From positions 178,065 to 242,064 of the IMG/VR virus record IMGVR_UViG_3300032116_014939: a stretch of 64,000 nucleotides of DNA. The stretch is one strand, 5' to 3'. Shown here in pieces: positions 30,501 to 61,175 of this stretch. A program made the position numbers and the translations under genes. The notes under the pieces were generated by a model. That model worked only from the letters and a program-made list of their open reading frames with translations. It ran no database searches and was not told the origin of the DNA. Every line of letters begins with the position of its first letter. Position 1 is the stretch's first letter.

Positions 30501-30895
30501 GGGGATGTTTTTGGATTTGACAGGTATGAATCTGTCATAAAACGCACGTCGGGGCTAAACTAACCCTGTAAAACTGGTTTAAAACACAAACGGCAACACA
30601 ATTGCAAAACTTTCTACACTCGGTTTAATCCGTACTGAAGAAGTAACTGTAGCCTAATCTAAGATTAGTATACAACGGGGTCGGTGAGCATATAACCTTG
30701 CAACAGAAGCTTGTACTGTGGTGTGGTTTCTATCCGAAAAGAAACAAAGTGGAGGATTAGTTCTCAGTAAACCGAACCACTATAAAATAAGGGAATTGTG
30801 AAGTTTCGGATTGTTTAGAAAAACAATGACCTAAACGTGTAGTGTTTTATGGTCGACATATTTGGACCGGGGTTCGAACCCCCGCATCTCCACCA
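30501..30895 (+). ncRNA. ssrA: tmRNA
   Basis: 5' GGGGATGTTTTTGGATTTGACAGG and 3' GGTTCGAACCCCCGCATCTCCACCA; acceptor stem GGGGAUG/CAUCUCC with the G3:U alanine determinant, T-loop and encoded CCA; 395 nt. Confidence 0.95.
30592..30657 (+). other. tmRNA tag reading frame (A)GNTIAKLSTLGLIRTEEVTVA*
   Basis: Resume-like context ACAAAC|GGC AAC, then 21 sense codons and TAA. Confidence 0.7.
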
Positions 30896-30898
30896 ATT

Positions 30899-30926
30899 AA
30901 AAAGGGACTTTTCAGTCCCTTTTTTT
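30899..30926. terminator. bidirectional intrinsic terminator after tmRNA
   Basis: AAAAAGGGACT-tttc-AGTCCCTTTTTT. Confidence 0.85.
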
Positions 30927-33288: not shown

Positions 33289-33365
33289 TGGTACCCCCGA
33301 AGGGATTCGAACCCCTGACCCACAGATTAGAAATCTGTTGCTCTATCCTACTGAGCTACGAAGGC
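33289..33365 (-). tRNA. tRNA-Arg(UCU)
   Basis: GCCTTCG-TA-GCTCAGTAGGATAGAGC-A-ACAGA-TTTCTAA-TCTGT-GGGTC-AGGGGTTCGAATCCCTT-CGGGGGT-ACCA; TATATTTG promoter at 33378-33385 (minus strand). Confidence 0.95.
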
Positions 33366-49344: not shown

Positions 49345-51132
49345 TTAAGAATAAATTCCTTGACTATAAATTTTCCATTCTTTTTCTCTTCGGTCTCTAT
49401 GACTAAAATCTAAAAAGTTAATTTTAACTGAATTAGAATTTGGATTCATTTTTAAAGAAGTACTTAATTTTGGGGCCTTTGTTGTACAACCCGCAAATCC
49501 AACTTGATAACATAATGATGATAATGCATCAACTTGTTTTTGATTTAAATTAGGATATATTGCTAATAACTTACCTGCCAATTTATTTAAAGCAGTTTTT
49601 AAATACGTTTTAGCAATATCTTTTGTTATTGATGGGTCTTTAGGTGATACTTTTCTACCATCAGGGTAATAAACCGTACCATAACCAATTGTCGGGGTTC
49701 CAGATGGAACTCTACCTTTTAAACAACAATCAGATTCTCCTCTAATACATTTACCACCTTTAGCATCATCATAAACACAAGGAACAAAAAACTCAATATT
49801 ACCAACAAAATTTACAAGATTATCTGAAACACCTGTAGGTTTTTGATTGGTTTTCTCATTTTTTTTAGATATTTCACTTGAGGCTTTTTGAAGACCGGAT
49901 TTAATTGTTTTATTTATATCACTAACAACACCTCCCGAATCTGGTTTCATTTGGTCTTTTGGTTGACCCATAGAAGACCATTTATCCATAAAATTTGGTT
50001 CTTTATTTGATTGGTTAAAACCCATAGTTTTATTAATGTCATCAAAAACTGATTGCTCATTAATATTTGGTTTTAACACAGTCATTGCTTCAGGAAAATC
50101 CTTATTTAAAACATCCTCATCTTTATTTGTATAAGGAATATTCTGTAAAACATATCTAATTGAATTTAAACCTGAAATCTTTTTATCGTTAGAATCCAAA
50201 ACAACCCAAGGATGGTTTACAGTGGATGTTTTATCAAAAAGTTTTTGTTTATACTCTGTAAACTTTTCCCACACATCTTGCATTTTTTCATCATTCTCAG
50301 AATACTTCCAATATTTCAATGGTGACTTTTGTCTAAAATCAAATCTTTTAGCCTGAGTTTCTTTATCTATTGAGAACCAAAGTTTGAATAGATAATCACC
50401 GTCAATAACTAATGACTCCTCAAAGTCCTGAACATTATCCATAAAGTCTTCATATTCATCTGAAGAACCATAACCCATAACAGGTTCCACTAAACCTCTA
50501 TTATACCAACTTCTATCAAAGAAGTTTATCTTACCTTTCTCAATTTGATTTCTGTATCTATCCCACCAGTTCTTTCTTTCATCGGGTGTAGGAATACCAA
50601 GAGCAATAACTTTATAATATCTTGGATTTAAGTTTTCAGTAAACTTTTTAATTGTTGAACCTTTACCTGCAGAATCTCTTCCTTCAAAAACAATAATAAC
50701 AGTTTTACCTGTTTGTTTTAACCATTCCTGTAGTTTTAATAATTCAACCTGAAGGAAAAATAATTCTTTCTTATAAATGTCCTTATCTAATATTGATGGC
50801 TCTTCTTCAGGACTAACAACTTCTTTTTTAGTTTTTCTTTTTTCTAATGATTTAGTTAGTTGTTTGAAAAATTCAAAAATATTAATGTCTTTACTACCTT
50901 TTAATTTTAAAGTTTTTAAAATACCTCTTGTAACTAATCCAAAATCAACTAAGCCATCTTTTGAATATTCTTCAATCTTATTAATGAATTTTTGAATTTG
51001 AGCACTATATACTTTGTTATCTTTTAAAACCGCAACAAGAGATTTAACCTCAGGGCTATACTTTGGTTTGTCAGCTTCTGTCAAACCCATTATGTTTTTC
51101 ATCTTACTAACTTCAGTTAATAAATTCCTCAT
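49345..51132 (-). CDS. ppk2: polyphosphate kinase 2 fused to a C-terminal GH24 (phage-type) lysozyme
   Basis: PPK2 Walker A 'FEGRDSAGKGSTIK', Walker B 'FDRSWYNR', lid 'RQKSPLKYWK'; lysozyme 'IEFFVPCVYDD...TPTIGYG', 'LNQKQVDALSSLCYQVG', 'RREKE'. Confidence 0.88.
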   Translation of the reverse strand: MRNLLTEVSKMKNIMGLTEADKPKYSPEVKSLVAVLKDNKVYSAQIQKFINKIEEYSKDGLVDFGLVTRGILKTLKLKGSKDINIFEFFKQLTKSLEKRKTKKEVVSPEEEPSILDKDIYKKELFFLQVELLKLQEWLKQTGKTVIIVFEGRDSAGKGSTIKKFTENLNPRYYKVIALGIPTPDERKNWWDRYRNQIEKGKINFFDRSWYNRGLVEPVMGYGSSDEYEDFMDNVQDFEESLVIDGDYLFKLWFSIDKETQAKRFDFRQKSPLKYWKYSENDEKMQDVWEKFTEYKQKLFDKTSTVNHPWVVLDSNDKKISGLNSIRYVLQNIPYTNKDEDVLNKDFPEAMTVLKPNINEQSVFDDINKTMGFNQSNKEPNFMDKWSSMGQPKDQMKPDSGGVVSDINKTIKSGLQKASSEISKKNEKTNQKPTGVSDNLVNFVGNIEFFVPCVYDDAKGGKCIRGESDCCLKGRVPSGTPTIGYGTVYYPDGRKVSPKDPSITKDIAKTYLKTALNKLAGKLLAIYPNLNQKQVDALSSLCYQVGFAGCTTKAPKLSTSLKMNPNSNSVKINFLDFSHRDRREKEWKIYSQGIYS

Positions 51133-51168
51133 ACTGATAAATACTTTTTAATAAATATTTTGTTAATG

Positions 51169-51199
51169 TTGATTATTTTTAATAAAACGCATATATTTA
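51169..51199 (+). promoter_or_regulatory. host-type promoter for the leader-peptide/AsnRS-like unit
   Basis: TTG (51169-51171), 20 bp, TATATTTA (51192-51199); one mismatch to TAnnTTTG. Confidence 0.55.
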
Positions 51200-51205
51200 A
51201 TTTTA

Positions 51206-51274
51206 ATGGTAACAAAAAAAGTTAAAAGAAAACTACGAAATTTAAACAACAATAATATTTTTAAGAAATCCTGA
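51206..51274 (+). CDS. Asn-rich attenuator leader peptide (not in ORF track)
   Basis: MVTKKVKRKLRNLNNNNIFKKS*; AAT TTA AAC AAC AAT AAT at 51239-51256. Confidence 0.72.
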   Translation: MVTKKVKRKLRNLNNNNIFKKS

Positions 51275-51294
51275 CATTTGTCAGGATTTTTTTT
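51266..51294 (+). terminator. attenuator-type intrinsic terminator overlapping the leader stop codon
   Basis: AAATCCTGAC-attt-GTCAGGATTT followed by TTTTT, 35 nt upstream of the AsnRS-like ATG and on the same strand. Confidence 0.85.
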
Positions 51295-51329
51295 GCCCTT
51301 TTAATAAATAAAATAAAAAAAAACAAAAA

Positions 51330-52154
51330 ATGAAAAACACAGAAACTTACAACGAGTTAGTTCAAAAGATGAGAACATTCTTCCAAAACAAAGGTTTTAA
51401 AGAAGTTCCAACTCAATCAAGATTATCAATCTTGGCGGCGTGTGAAAATCCACACTCAATAACAACATTCAATTATCAAGGAGAAGTATGGCCACTACCA
51501 CAGACGGGTCAAATGTGGTTAGAATACGAACTTCTTAAGAATCCTGAATGGAACGGTGTCTATTGTATTTCAACGTCTTATAGACAAGAAAAAGACCCAA
51601 TTCCAGGTCGTCACGAAATGATTTTTCCAATGTTTGAATTCGAATCAAAAGGTGGAATGAAAGAAATGTTAAAACTTGAATCTGAACTTTTAGATTATTT
51701 AGGTTTTGATTCACCTGTAGAAGTTAACTACGATGATGTATGTGAAGAGTACGGTGGAGTTTCAATTTTAGAAAACGAACACGAAACAAGAATGTGGGAA
51801 GAAAAAGGTTCAGTCGTCTCACTTCAAAATTTCCCATACAGAACAAACCCATTTTGGAACATGAGAGAAAGTGAAAACAAAATATTCAACAAAGTTGATG
51901 TAATTCTTTACGGACAAGAAACAATTGGTTCCGCAGAAAGAAGTTCTAACGTAGAAGAAATGAAAAATAACTTCTACACAATAGAAAATGGAAAATATTC
52001 TGAAAAACTTTTTGAACTATTCGGAAAAGAAAGAGTTGAGAAGGAATTAGAAGAATTCTTATCTCATGATTTCTTCCCAAGATTTGGTGGTGGGATTGGG
52101 ATGACCCGTTTAGCAAGAGCTTACGAACTACTACAACAAGAAGTAACAGTATAA
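51330..52154 (+). CDS. class IIb aaRS catalytic-core paralog (AsnRS-like, probable asparagine synthetase)
   Basis: Motif 2 'STSYRQE...RHEMIFPMFEFE' and motif 3 'RFGGGIGMTRL'; 274 aa with no anticodon-binding OB domain. Confidence 0.8.
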   Translation: MKNTETYNELVQKMRTFFQNKGFKEVPTQSRLSILAACENPHSITTFNYQGEVWPLPQTGQMWLEYELLKNPEWNGVYCISTSYRQEKDPIPGRHEMIFPMFEFESKGGMKEMLKLESELLDYLGFDSPVEVNYDDVCEEYGGVSILENEHETRMWEEKGSVVSLQNFPYRTNPFWNMRESENKIFNKVDVILYGQETIGSAERSSNVEEMKNNFYTIENGKYSEKLFELFGKERVEKELEEFLSHDFFPRFGGGIGMTRLARAYELLQQEVTV

Positions 52155-52159
52155 ACCAT

Positions 52160-52187
52160 AAATCCCCTCATTAGAGGGGATTTTTTT
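52160..52187. terminator. bidirectional intrinsic terminator
   Basis: AAATCCCCTC-atta-GAGGGGATTTTTTT. Confidence 0.85.
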
Positions 52188-52350
52188 ATTCTTTAATCTC
52201 TTTCATCAACTTACCCCACAAAGCTGTCTGTAATAGGATAAGACCAACACTTAAAACAAATACAGGTAATGATGGTGAGCTAACCATTAATACAACTGAT
52301 AATACAAGAGCGAACATTGCTGAAGTCAATTTTAGTTTTAAGTTTTTCAT
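52186..52350 (-). CDS. 54-aa two-TM membrane peptide (not in ORF track)
   Basis: MKNLKLKLTSAMFALVLSVVLMVSSPSLPVFVLSVGLILLQTALWGKLMKEIKE; TATATTTG upstream. Confidence 0.7.
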   Translation of the reverse strand: MKNLKLKLTSAMFALVLSVVLMVSSPSLPVFVLSVGLILLQTALWGKLMKEIKE

Positions 52351-52430
52351 AGTGGTGTCGGTGTTAATTGTTCTACAAATATAAACAAAAAAACTCCCAA
52401 TCGGGAGTTTTTCATTATTTTTTTTTTAAA

Positions 52431-52847
52431 TTAATATCTTCTTGTTTTTCTTCTGATATTTTCAGCCATTGGCTTCATTGGTTCTTCATCTTCAATATCC
52501 ATATTATCAACTTCAACTTCAGAATCCATTTCTTCACCTGAATTCATTTTATTACTTTCATAATCTTGGATGATAGACTTAAGTTCCATCGCCTCTTGTT
52601 CTTTTCCTTCAGTTTTTCTTAAATGACGATAAAAATCCTTAAGATAATCCCATCCTGCTATACCTAAAAGTGCAATAGTTGTACCAACCATTGTAGCAAT
52701 CGCCCCACCTGTACTCATAGCCTCAGGATTAAAGAAGTTTTCAACCGCTTCATTAACTCCATTTTTTTTATTTCTTTTTGTTTCTTTAACTACTGTTTTA
52801 ATTAAGTTAGTTAATTCTGATTCTGACAATCTTACTACTTTTTTCAT
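52431..52847 (-). CDS. leader-bearing protein with one TM segment
   Basis: MKKVVRLSESELTNLIKTVVKE leader; 'AIATMVGTTIALLGIAGW'. Confidence 0.75.
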   Translation of the reverse strand: MKKVVRLSESELTNLIKTVVKETKRNKKNGVNEAVENFFNPEAMSTGGAIATMVGTTIALLGIAGWDYLKDFYRHLRKTEGKEQEAMELKSIIQDYESNKMNSGEEMDSEVEVDNMDIEDEEPMKPMAENIRRKTRRY

Positions 52848-52865
52848 TTTTTTGTTTTTTTTATT

Positions 52866-53441
52866 TTATCTTGGAGCACCTCTATATGATGCATTTGGTT
52901 TAATTGGTACTACATAATCAGGGGTTCCTTTATAAGTACAAAACGGTCTTGATGTAATTACTTTTGCTAAATCGTTATTTAGATAATCTTCTTTAATTCC
53001 ACCTTTTCTTTTGAAAGGTTCACCAATAGCACCTAATCCTTTTTCAAATGCCGAGTTACAATTCCATCTGAATTTAATAGGTTCACTATATCTTTTTTTA
53101 TCTCTATTTAAAAAAGTACCTGTATAACCCTCAACGTCCGAACCTGTAATATCTTGGACTGTAAATTCAACTGTTGGTAAATTATTAATCGTTGTTATTC
53201 CAACTTGTTTTATTTTATAGTTTTCAGAAGTTCTTTTACCTTTAAACATCCCACTTTCACCTGTATATTTGTTTAAACCATAAGCATTAAACATAAGAAC
53301 TTCAGAACCTGTAAGACCTGATACTTCCTTACGAAATTGTTCAGGTGTTTTTGCAGTTAAATCATCGTTTTCTTTTATAACTTTTTTAATTAAATTAATA
53401 AGTTCATTTTCTGTTAATCTAATAACTTTTTCTTTTTTCAT
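52866..53441 (-). CDS. leader-bearing hypothetical protein
   Basis: MKKEKVIRLTENELINLIKKVIKEN leader. Confidence 0.75.
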   Translation of the reverse strand: MKKEKVIRLTENELINLIKKVIKENDDLTAKTPEQFRKEVSGLTGSEVLMFNAYGLNKYTGESGMFKGKRTSENYKIKQVGITTINNLPTVEFTVQDITGSDVEGYTGTFLNRDKKRYSEPIKFRWNCNSAFEKGLGAIGEPFKRKGGIKEDYLNNDLAKVITSRPFCTYKGTPDYVVPIKPNASYRGAPR

Positions 53442-59557: not shown

Positions 59558-59929
59558 TTAAAATTCGCTTGTTCTAACTTTTTTCGCATATTGACCTACA
59601 CCCCAACTATTAAAACCATGTTTTCTTAATTTATCTTTAGCTTTGTTTGCCTCACTTCTTGAAAATCCACAATCTTCAAAATCTAATGGAGCCCCAACAT
59701 CAAATACCAAATAATCTGCTAAATACTTATATGTAATACAACCCGCTTTAAGATACGGTTCCATAGCGTTAAACACCGGTTGTGTTTCAATATCTTTATC
59801 TGATGGTTTAGAATTAAATCCACTATAAAATGTGTCTTTTATCTTATCTTCCCAACTATCATTTTCTTTGATGACTTTCTTAACTATTTTAACCAAATCA
59901 GACTCGGTTAATCTTATAACTTTTTTCAT
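59558..59929 (-). CDS. leader-bearing protein (paralog of 59169-59552)
   Basis: MKKVIRLTESDLVKIVKKVIKEN leader; same C-terminal domain. Confidence 0.8.
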   Translation of the reverse strand: MKKVIRLTESDLVKIVKKVIKENDSWEDKIKDTFYSGFNSKPSDKDIETQPVFNAMEPYLKAGCITYKYLADYLVFDVGAPLDFEDCGFSRSEANKAKDKLRKHGFNSWGVGQYAKKVRTSEF

Positions 59930-61140: not shown

Positions 61141-61175
61141 ATGTAATAAATATAACAGAAATAAAAAAGGGGAAA

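Follow-up and report, generated by a model that had tools for sequence, protein, structure and literature searches.

A putative asparagine-codon leader attenuator upstream of an AsnRS-like gene in phages

Introduction

Can a phage carry a leader-peptide switch that senses the supply of an amino acid, as bacteria do in front of many amino acid biosynthesis genes? This question is raised by a locus in a 64,000-nt stretch of the IMG/VR virus record IMGVR_UViG_3300032116_014939 (positions 178,065 to 242,064 of the record; hereafter the window, with all coordinates counted from its first nucleotide), in which a short asparagine-rich open reading frame (ORF) and a transcription terminator precede a gene related to asparaginyl-tRNA synthetase (AsnRS). 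A sequence-only reading of this locus had proposed a ribosomal attenuator in which a ribosome stalled on the Asn codons during Asn-tRNA scarcity covers the start of the terminator hairpin and allows read-through, so that the phage switches on its own Asn supply on demand. Each of the sequence features described in that reading was found to be correct to the base, whereas the interpretation built on them is only partly supported: a leader-peptide and terminator element with specific Asn enrichment and no antiterminator is present, but the proposed occlusion of the hairpin by a stalled ribosome fits the geometry poorly and the direction of regulation is not proven. Literature searches identified no description of such an element in phages, or for Asn in any organism.

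Sequence anatomy of the leader region

The leader ORF comprises 22 codons and a TGA stop codon (51206-51274, plus strand; ATG at 51206, TGA at 51272-51274) and encodes the predicted peptide MVTKKVKRKLRNLNNNNIFKKS. Its Asn codons are situated at 51239-41, 51245-47, 51248-50, 51251-53 and 51254-56 and form the run N-L-N-N-N-N (51239-51256; AAT TTA AAC AAC AAT AAT), i.e., five Asn in six codons. The stop codon lies within the 5' arm of a predicted intrinsic terminator (51266-51294), which consists of the 5' arm AAATCCTGAC (51266-75), the loop ATTT (51276-79) and the 3' arm GTCAGGATTT (51280-89), giving a 10-bp stem with a G+C core at 51269-75 / 51280-86, and a run of eight T at 51287-94. The leader folds at -18.4 kcal/mol (z = -3.2 against shuffled sequences). 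A standard terminator scan missed this hairpin only because it extends the stem greedily into the T run, while a second scan recovered it. Among about 14 hairpin and T-run sites in the window, it is the only one that does not follow a gene of at least 80 aa or an RNA gene. The upstream gene, a PPK2-lysozyme fusion (49345-51132), is located on the minus strand, so this terminator ends no plus-strand gene.

The ORF had also been reported to follow a host-type promoter. The respective sequence, TTGATT-17-TATATT (51169-51197, plus strand), is a 9/12 match of a kind that is no commoner than in shuffled sequences, and its upstream element TTGATT (51169-51174) is weak evidence on its own, although a TTG at similar spacing is visible in relatives. 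The second box, however, belongs to the motif TATATTTA (51192-51199; form TAnnTTT[A/G]; the TTG lies 20 nt before it), which ends no more than 14 nt before the ATG of 27 of 69 window genes, against a background of 4.6%, and also precedes the leader ATG in relatives. Based on the position of the Flavobacterium sigma-A -7 box (-12 to -5; PMC9723704), the transcript start is inferred at about 51204, which would leave a 5' UTR of 0-2 nt. Shine-Dalgarno-like motifs occur before only 3 of 69 genes. The best TerL hits are Flavobacterium phages at only 28% identity, and the host remains inferred from the promoter form and this lack of Shine-Dalgarno sequences.

The T run is immediately followed by GCCC (51295-51298). 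Either GCCC or ACCC follows the T run in 41 of 49 distinct relatives, while none of the other window terminators has it. A conserved G was found after the U run in 42 of 49 cases, with GGA 9-10 nt before it, a sequence resemblance to the E. coli RNA polymerase pause consensus (G at -10, U at -1, G at +1) that could reflect a pause context of the kind that synchronises ribosome and polymerase in coupling-type (pyrBI/pyrE) attenuators, and small extra hairpins occur in some long leaders; a role for either in pausing is conjectural. The 35 nt between the T run and the ATG at 51330 (51295-51329) form an A-rich spacer without a promoter box or a Shine-Dalgarno sequence, which is taken to serve as the translation initiation region of the main gene. 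Across relatives, the spacer has a median length of 35 nt and an A content of 60%, and the internal cistron for the major head protein exhibits the same kind of A-rich region before its ATG.

The downstream gene

The gene following the spacer (51330-52154, plus strand) encodes a 274-aa class II aaRS catalytic core that is AsnRS-like and lacks an anticodon-binding domain. A bidirectional terminator (52160-52183) closes the cassette. Pfam PF00152 matches the protein with E = 3e-13 over residues 6-262, in agreement with a class II core containing motifs 2 and 3, and a profile of the family hits AsnRS cores best. The AlphaFold model (pLDDT 96) retrieved AsnRS at E = 1e-17 and archaeal asparagine synthetase A, which has the same core-only length, at E = 1e-15 in Foldseek searches; the archaeal structures 3REU, 3RL6 and 3P8T matched at E = 1e-15 to 1e-14 with TM-scores of 0.66-0.69 normalised to the target. 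Membership in either family is not supported at the sequence level. The N-terminal OB-fold domain of AsnRS, which has a full length of about 430-470 aa, is missing, the protein aligns only to roughly residues 140-430 of AsnRS chains, and NCBIfam asnS models score 29-32 bits against cut-offs of 343-414. Similarly, the NCBIfam model for asparagine synthetase A (NF005053) scores 22.8 bits against a cut-off of 322. Synthesis of Asn from Asp and NH3 and the proposed "own Asn supply" are unproven, and any enzymatic activity is at most inferred from the fold. An independent link of the gene family to Asn is provided by cyanophage P-SSM7, in which the homologue is followed directly by tRNA-Asn.

Conservation among related phages

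Conservation of the Asn-rich ORF and terminator in homologous loci with drifting flanks had been put forward beforehand as a test of the proposal. Of roughly 600 viral loci, 160 were retrievable for comparison. In 67 of 104 distinct upstream regions from related contigs of uncultured big phages, the same layout was identified: a promoter box, an ATG 6-12 nt later, a short ORF, a terminator and an A-rich spacer. These leaders encode 47 distinct peptides. The neighboring genes and their strand differ between contigs, indicating that the leader travels with the gene. The terminator keeps its position although at least 12 different, perfectly paired inner stems occur. The promoter-proximal ATG frame stays open up to the stem in 18 of 19 lineages, with the first stop codon at -15 to +12 nt from the stem core, against 0 of 19 in frame +2, which indicates selection on the leader frame. 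In three relatives (upstream regions L029, L030 and L033), an ordinary 93-aa gene takes the place of the leader ORF in front of the same terminator; only there does the terminator belong to an upstream gene, a reading that was rejected for the window and most relatives, where the upstream gene is divergent or variable.

The leader does not appear to be inherited from a cellular homologue. Bacteroidota homologues have no such leader, and CPR homologues often have a 5' terminator but no Asn-rich ORF, as short ORFs at terminators upstream of cellular homologues contain only 5.5% Asn. Cyanophage (P-SSM2, P-SSM7) and marine P0122-clade homologues are operonic or sit in a tRNA cluster and have no leader. 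A search with the tail motif GGATTTTTTTTGCCC did not generalize the element, since only 18 of 119 viral hits lie at AsnRS-like genes and the rest represent unrelated contexts.

Asparagine enrichment of the leader

Once relatives are considered, the Asn run exceeds chance. Asn accounts for 19-20% of leader codons, against 6.4% in the window proteome, and AAY triplets number 62/312 in frame, against 24/293 and 15/293 out of frame. Markov-1 and Markov-2 simulations conditioned on an open frame yielded 11.7% Asn (z = 4.4; 0 of 3000 simulations), and Asn is the only residue enriched beyond what base composition predicts, while Lys is fully explained by A-richness. Asn-Asn doublets occur in 10 of 19 lineages, against a simulated mean of 3.0, and Asn positions are more conserved than other positions in 6 of 6 leader families. 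As the lineages are related, these statistics overstate independence. No preference between the two Asn codons was detected, with AAC making up 31% in leaders and 29% in genes. Asn richness is not universal: about a third of lineages have one or two Asn codons or none (for example MRKKTQK and MSHGHPNITKIKPKKSFPLY), and one lineage has an Asn-poor ORF that runs through the hairpin.

These exceptions leave room for a translation-coupled or merely leaky attenuator without Asn sensing, in which the short ORF and terminator set a fixed, low or growth rate-dependent level of read-through and the Asn richness is a by-product of an A-rich, unstructured, open frame or of slow codons used as a timer. 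The leaders are indeed 50% A and unstructured, one lineage reads through the hairpin with no Asn codons, and L029, L030 and L033 keep the terminator behind an ordinary gene. However, Lys, which is equally favored by A-richness, does not exceed the simulations, the Asn positions are the best conserved within leader families, and the regulated gene being an AsnRS relative would remain an unexplained coincidence. This reading is considered unlikely.

Search for antiterminator, internal promoter and known RNA families

Folding of the window leader and of 15 other lineages without the 3' arm revealed no conserved structure that competes with the 5' arm. The leader upstream of the 3' arm folds at -0.2 to -0.3 kcal/mol, weaker than shuffled sequences (z = +1.3 and +1.9), and no pairing with the 5' arm is conserved across 15 lineages. 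A permissive Rfam search over 50000-53000 returned no hit in 51133-51329 even at E <= 1, and at gathering score the whole window gives only tmRNA and one tRNA. Sub-threshold Phe/Trp/Leu_leader hits fall on other terminators and are generic hairpin and U-run matches.

An independent promoter for the AsnRS-like gene was rejected, as only 1 of 49 distinct spacers contains a promoter-like motif. This also bears on the possibility that promoter, short ORF and terminator form a separate small transcription unit, either a small RNA or an A-A-N repeat site for an RNA-binding protein such as an Hfq-like factor together with the U tail, with the gene transcribed from an unrecognised promoter in the spacer. 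A-A-N triplet repeats followed by a terminator U tail resemble Hfq-binding small RNAs, and ATAAATA-like strings occur in many spacers. However, some spacers are only 10-20 nt long, the enrichment is for AAY and not for AAN in general, the ATG frame is kept open to the stem, the unit is found only in front of this gene and no Rfam match exists. This scenario is very unlikely.

Proposed mode of action

Taken together, the element is best explained as a ribosome-dependent transcription attenuator without an antiterminator. In this model, transcription starts at the TATATTTA promoter essentially at the leader ATG, so that the mRNA is leaderless or nearly so, like many genes of this phage, and a ribosome translates the short Asn-rich ORF, which ends at or inside the 5' arm of the terminator. 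The AsnRS-like gene would be made only by read-through. Because no alternative RNA structure was found, the ribosome itself would be the antiterminator: if it follows RNA polymerase closely enough to cover the 5' arm while the T run is being transcribed, the hairpin cannot form and the polymerase reads on, and the Asn codons would make the arrival of the ribosome depend on the supply of charged tRNA-Asn. The analysis itself establishes the architecture, its conservation, the Asn-specific enrichment and the lack of an antiterminator and of an internal promoter, whereas the transcript start, translation of the leader, termination, the competition between ribosome and terminator and, above all, the sign of the response are inferred from sequence alone.

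The sign considered most likely from the anatomy is that fast Asn decoding results in read-through, while stalling on Asn codons leaves the hairpin free and results in termination. With an Asn codon in the A site, the leading edge of a ribosome reaches about 12 nt downstream, as known from footprinting and toeprinting, which in the window corresponds to at most 51266-51268 and covers only the A-U base of the stem and not the G+C core. Across lineages, the Asn runs end mostly 13-31 nt before the core, 4-8 sense codons are kept open between the last Asn and the stem, and it is the stop codon that is positionally fixed. In addition, two lineages translate straight through the hairpin. These observations point to a ribosome that has passed the Asn codons as the species that blocks the terminator. 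This model is held with no more than even confidence. Its sign is the opposite of every characterised amino acid leader peptide and would make an Asn-related enzyme less abundant when Asn-tRNA is scarce, which has no obvious benefit unless it acts as a positive-feedback ramp or the enzyme consumes Asn. Furthermore, for the shortest leaders (9 codons), a ribosome must load and translate within roughly half a second unless the polymerase pauses.

The opposite sign, as originally proposed, would have a ribosome stalled on the last Asn codons sterically prevent completion of the hairpin, either at its A-U base or through a clash with RNA polymerase, while under Asn sufficiency the ribosome finishes and leaves and the hairpin forms. 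This is the regulatory logic of characterised amino acid leader peptides and of pheST-type control of a synthetase gene, and it most naturally explains the Asn-specific enrichment. In about 7 of 19 lineages the last Asn codon of the run lies 13-17 nt from the G+C core, so that a stalled ribosome would abut the stem and cover its A-tract; in 4-5 lineages an in-frame AAT forms the base of the stem itself, where a stalled ribosome would cover the arm; and in the 9-codon family the two Asn codons nearest the stem are invariant while earlier positions vary. Occupancy of positions -13 to -17 by the last Asn codon is, by a hand estimate, about what the overall Asn frequency predicts and does not discriminate between the two signs. 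Against this model, the Asn codons of most lineages are too distant for a stalled ribosome to cover the core, and severe starvation would stall the ribosome at the first Asn codon, which is farther away still. In the replete state, a ribosome cannot reach a stop codon inside the arm before the polymerase has passed the decision point, and a closely following ribosome would block the hairpin even better, so that the model has no clear OFF state. It also gives no reason to keep 4-8 codons open before the stem. It is thus regarded as possible but doubtful.

Implications

It is about as likely as not that a clade of big freshwater-type phages carries a self-contained, mobile sensor of charged tRNA-Asn, consisting of a leaderless Asn-codon leader peptide that works directly against a terminator with no antiterminator RNA and controls a previously uncharacterised AsnRS-core enzyme, possibly with an inverted (feed-forward) sign. 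This would be the first amino acid-responsive leader-peptide attenuator known from a virus and the first one for asparagine. If confirmed, it would show that phages do not only import metabolic and translation genes, but also carry sensors that read the tRNA-charging state of the host during infection. The minimal design (promoter, 7-26 codons, one hairpin) would be attractive for dissecting ribosome-polymerase coupling in hosts that lack Shine-Dalgarno sequences and useful as a compact synthetic part. Finally, it would flag an uncharacterised, widespread family of AsnRS-core proteins, found in phages, CPR bacteria, DPANN archaea and Bacteroidota and carrying at least three different 5' control architectures, as Asn-linked and tightly regulated.

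Comparison with known systems

The regulated protein shares the class II core fold with archaeal asparagine synthetase A (AsnRS-like, core only; PDB 3P8T/3REU) and with AsnRS catalytic cores, which are its best matches, and has the same core-only length as the archaeal enzyme (TM-score 0.69-0.72). However, identity is only about 20%, and cellular members are named only "amino acid--tRNA ligase-related protein."

Classical amino acid leader-peptide attenuators (trp, his, leu, thr, pheA; pheST for a synthetase gene) exhibit the same order of promoter, short ORF enriched in codons for the amino acid related to the downstream gene, intrinsic terminator and structural gene. In contrast to these, no antiterminator or 1:2 pause hairpin was found here, no Rfam leader family matches, no leader for Asn has been described as far as is known, and the likely sign is reversed. 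In actinobacteria, ilvB leader ORFs overlap terminator hairpins, with a mode of action that is described as unclear (PMC1262725). There, the Ile/Val/Leu codon runs themselves overlap the hairpin, while in the phage leaders the Asn codons mostly lie upstream of it, and host group, amino acid and gene all differ.

The closest resemblance in mechanism would be to the E. coli pyrBI and rph-pyrE attenuators, in which a translated ORF ends next to, or runs through, a terminator hairpin, no antiterminator is present, a ribosome close behind RNA polymerase prevents hairpin formation and the distance of the stop codon to the hairpin is critical (PMC2784333). Here, the stop codon is likewise anchored within ribosome reach of the 5' arm, and one lineage group (L047/L052) reads through the hairpin. 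In pyrBI and pyrE, the sensed variable is UTP-dependent polymerase speed and the ORF has no cognate-codon run, whereas the phage ORF is enriched in Asn codons, is probably leaderless, is very short and precedes an AsnRS-like gene, and ribosome speed rather than polymerase speed would be the variable.

Sequence features of the Asn leader

The sequence-only reading had described a short Asn-rich open reading frame (ORF) whose stop codon lies within a terminator-like hairpin upstream of an AsnRS-like gene, and every statement that it made about the sequence was found to be correct. The ORF runs from the ATG at 51206 to the TGA at 51272-74 and encodes MVTKKVKRKLRNLNNNNIFKKS, with Asn codons at 51239-41 and 51245-56. 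The stop codon is located inside the 5' arm of a hairpin with arms at 51266-75 and 51280-89, the loop ATTT, and a G+C core at 51269-75 / 51280-86. Eight T follow (51287-94), then GCCC, and 35 nt separate the T run from the ATG of the AsnRS-like gene at 51330. The leader folds at -18.4 kcal/mol (z = -3.2). A first terminator scan missed this hairpin because it extends the stem into the T run, whereas a second scan identified it among about 14 hairpin+T-run sites in the window, all others of which sit at the 3' end of a gene or RNA.

The upstream gene (49345-51132, minus strand) codes for a 595-aa fusion of a polyphosphate kinase 2 (PPK2) domain (PF03976, E = 2e-70) with a C-terminal phage lysozyme domain (PF00959), and its own promoter box GTATTTAT is located 4 nt before its ATG, at 51137-51144 on the minus strand. 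The terminator therefore stands in a divergent intergenic region and ends no plus-strand gene.

Promoter motif and gene expression signals of the phage

The box TATATTTA (51192-99) is one instance of a motif, TAnnTTT[A/G] or GTATTTAT, which ends no more than 14 nt before the ATG of 27 of 69 window genes, against a 4.6% background. A TATATTTA/GTATTTAT box was found 3-14 nt before the ATG of 39% of genes, often directly after a terminator, for example at 61154(-), 60325(-), 57733(-), 55075(-), 49340(-), 42209(+), 42224(-), 31806(+) and 21189(-). Shine-Dalgarno-like motifs are absent, as they precede 3 of 69 genes against a 5.8% background. Most transcription units of this phage therefore appear to be leaderless or nearly so, whereas only about 5% of Flavobacterium host mRNAs are leaderless (PMC9723704). 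The motif resembles the Flavobacterium sigma-A -7 box TAnnTTTG, which occupies positions -12 to -5 (PMC9723704), and this placement would put the transcript start at about 51204, two bases before the leader ATG. The leader ATG thus sits exactly where real genes of this phage have their start codons. The AsnRS-like gene instead exhibits the A-rich pre-ATG region typical of internal cistrons, such as the major head gene.

The phage is a jumbo phage with T4-like packaging that carries major head, portal and TerL genes, and a contig identical over this gene locus is 242 kb long. Its nearest cultured TerL relatives are Flavobacterium phages at 28% identity and the host is therefore only inferred. 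The genome also encodes a bona fide tmRNA at 30501-30895 on the plus strand (Rfam RF00023, 133.5 bits; ARAGORN tag peptide AKLSTLGLIRTEEVTVA), followed by its own terminator at 30899-30924, and a tRNA-Arg(TCT) at 33289-33365 on the minus strand, so that a ribosome-rescue RNA is present in the same genome as a putative ribosome-stalling leader. Several small minus-strand genes (52431-52847, 52866-53441, and others with starts near 59929, 60764, 61140 and 63476) begin with the same N-terminal peptide, MKK(x)(V/I)IRL(T/S)E(S/N)EL(T/I)NLIK. Each has its own promoter box and is often separated from its neighbor by a terminator, which suggests a paralogous family of small proteins.

Conservation of the leader among related phages

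For comparison, 80 + 28 + 80 viral loci encoding relatives of the protein were collected. Of 104 distinct upstream regions, 67 exhibit the order promoter box, ATG, short ORF, terminator, A-rich spacer and gene, nine have the terminator without a recognized box, and 28 show other architectures. The neighboring gene differs in identity and strand between contigs, indicating that the leader travels with the gene as a cassette. The terminator keeps its position 20-75 nt before the ATG, and its outer frame AATCC...GGAT-T8 is constant while the inner stem takes at least 12 different, perfectly paired forms. The leader peptides comprise 47 distinct sequences of 7-26 codons. Starting from the promoter-proximal ATG, the first stop codon falls -15 to +12 nt from the first G/C of the stem in 18 of 19 lineages, compared with 0 of 19 in frame +2. 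Only 1 of 49 distinct spacers between the T run and the gene carries a promoter-like box, and the alternative that the leader constitutes a separate small RNA unit is regarded as very unlikely.

GCCC or ACCC immediately follows the T run (51295-51298 in the window, and the same position in the compared loci L001-L270) in 41 of 49 distinct relatives, but follows no other terminator in the window. Several homologues from CPR bacteria also show T-run+GCC(C) at their 5' terminators (loci L132, L173, L156, L160 and L161). A polymerase pause context is only a guess at the role of this motif.

Two further 5' architectures were found in front of the same gene family. In eleven phage loci (L025, L027, L028, L078, L096, L098, L100, L101, L105, L226 and L241), the last ~60 nt before the gene contain a GATATATA-like box, a variable hairpin and then an invariant CAAAAAAAAAATTTCT directly before the ATG, without a terminator or leader ORF. 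Homologues from Saccharibacteria (L121, L146, L148, L151, L169, L170, L175, L176, L177, L184 and L189) carry a conserved structured leader of about 90 nt, located about 40-130 nt upstream of the gene. It consists of ATGCATAAA, a long hairpin whose stem differs in sequence between genomes yet stays complementary (as judged by eye, since RNAalifold did not predict it), the terminator AACAGCCC-TTCG-GGGCTGTT with a T7 run, and then TTTATGCAT, which is complementary to the 5' end. This leader has no Asn-rich ORF and no Rfam match, and can be considered a candidate RNA- or protein-mediated attenuator, or a riboswitch.

Enrichment of asparagine codons

Taking one leader per lineage, Asn makes up 19-20% of codons, against 6.4% in the window proteome, and AAY triplets number 62/312 in frame, against 24/293 and 15/293 out of frame. 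In first- and second-order Markov simulations built from the leaders themselves and conditioned on an open frame, Asn is expected at 11.7% (z = 4.4, 0 of 3000). Asn is the only residue that stands out, as the equally striking Lys content is fully explained by A-richness. Asn-Asn doublets occur in 10 of 19 lineages, against a simulated mean of 3.0 and a maximum of 9 in 2000 simulations, and in 7.5% of A-rich spurious short ORFs in the window. These values should be read with the caveat that the lineages are related and that about a third of them are Asn-poor. Within six leader families, Asn positions were better conserved than other positions in all six (0.82 against 0.69), while AAT/AAC usage matches that of genes. 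As a negative control, short ORFs that end at terminators upstream of cellular homologues contain 5.5% Asn. An attenuator without any Asn sensing is considered unlikely.

The AsnRS-like gene family

The 274-aa protein is a class II aaRS catalytic core (PF00152) with no anticodon-binding domain. A family profile hits AsnRS cores best (E = 1e-12), followed by AspRS and EpmA. A confident structural model (pLDDT 96) matches AsnRS at E = 1e-17, and the archaeal core-only asparagine synthetase A over its whole length at E = 1e-15. However, the protein fails the curated cut-offs of both asnS and asparagine synthetase A. The family is large and uncharacterized, with 690 representative clusters. In cellular genomes (loci L111-L190 among those compared), 254 relatives at 55-64% identity to the phage protein were found in CPR bacteria, DPANN archaea, Dependentiae and Bacteroidota. 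These are named “amino acid--tRNA ligase-related protein” at NCBI and are sometimes mis-annotated as “transposase,” and in Weeksellaceae the gene lies directly after PEP carboxykinase. An independent link to Asn is provided by the homologue of Prochlorococcus phage P-SSM7 (locus L081, record positions 117319-118209), which is annotated as “tRNA ligase” and sits inside a tRNA cluster (Ile, Arg and Leu upstream), with tRNA-Asn following directly, 8 nt downstream.

Proposed mechanism and direction of regulation

No antiterminator exists, as the leader upstream of the 3' arm is less structured than shuffles in the window and no competing structure is conserved in 15 lineages. In this view, the ribosome would be the only agent that can prevent formation of the hairpin. 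It was proposed in the sequence-only reading that a ribosome stalled on the Asn codons blocks the hairpin, the alternative being a ribosome that has already passed them. The leading edge of a ribosome lies about 12 nt downstream of the first base of the A-site codon. With N12-N17 in the A site, this edge would be at 51251-51266, which is at most the A-U foot of the stem and never the G+C core. Across lineages, the Asn runs end mostly 13-31 nt before the core, whereas the stop codon is anchored at the stem, and 4-8 sense codons are kept open between the last Asn and the stem. One lineage group (loci L047/L052) has a leader ORF that runs straight through the hairpin. When polymerase is at the end of the T run, a tightly coupled ribosome would have its A site about 5 nt before the core and would cover the whole 5' arm, assuming roughly 34 nt between the P site and the polymerase active site, as reported for expressome structures, while a ribosome only three or four codons behind would leave the arm free.

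This geometry is that of the pyrBI/pyrE attenuators, in which a stop codon close to the attenuator is needed for read-through (PMC2784333). We therefore favor a reading in which rapid decoding of the Asn codons gives read-through and stalling gives termination, although this direction is held to be only about as likely as not. The architecture, its conservation, the Asn-specific enrichment and the lack of an antiterminator are established by the sequence comparisons, whereas the transcript start, translation of the leader, termination, the competition between ribosome and hairpin and, above all, the direction of regulation are inferred. A conserved G follows the U run in 42 of 49 cases, with GGA 9-10 nt before it, which fits the pause consensus G(-10) Y(-1) G(+1) of E. 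coli; that such a pause could lengthen the decision window is conjecture. Longer leaders whose Asn codons lie far from the terminator (L032, L034, L057 and L077) carry an extra small hairpin of 4-8 bp within the leader ORF, between the Asn codons and the terminator, which does not overlap the terminator arm and might be a pause hairpin.

The favored direction runs against the logic of all known amino-acid leaders, and of pheST-type synthetase control, and has no obvious benefit unless the loop works as a positive-feedback ramp during the lytic cycle or the enzyme consumes Asn. The opposite direction, in which stalling on Asn codons gives read-through, appears less likely but is physically plausible in the 4-5 lineages where an in-frame AAT forms the foot of the stem. 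It is marginally plausible where the last Asn lies 13-16 nt from the core, because a ribosome abutting polymerase might hinder closure of the lowest base pairs. Thus, the observation itself is confirmed, while its interpretation is supported in part: strong comparative evidence supports an Asn-linked ribosomal attenuator, but neither occlusion of the hairpin by a stalled ribosome nor the direction proposed in the sequence-only reading is supported by the geometry.

Comparison with known attenuators

No Rfam family matches the element, and full-text searches identified neither an Asn leader peptide nor a phage leader-peptide attenuator in the literature covered, which does not prove that none has been described. 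The nearest published anatomy is found in actinobacterial ilvB leaders, whose ORFs overlap terminators and whose mode of action is called unclear (PMC1262725). With classical leader-peptide attenuators, the element shares three of the defining features, namely a short ORF, enrichment of the cognate codon and a terminator, but it lacks the fourth, the antiterminator. What appears to be new is the combination of being phage-borne, Asn-specific, leaderless as inferred from the promoter position, and without an antiterminator, while in its anatomy the element fits the coupling type exemplified by pyrBI/pyrE.
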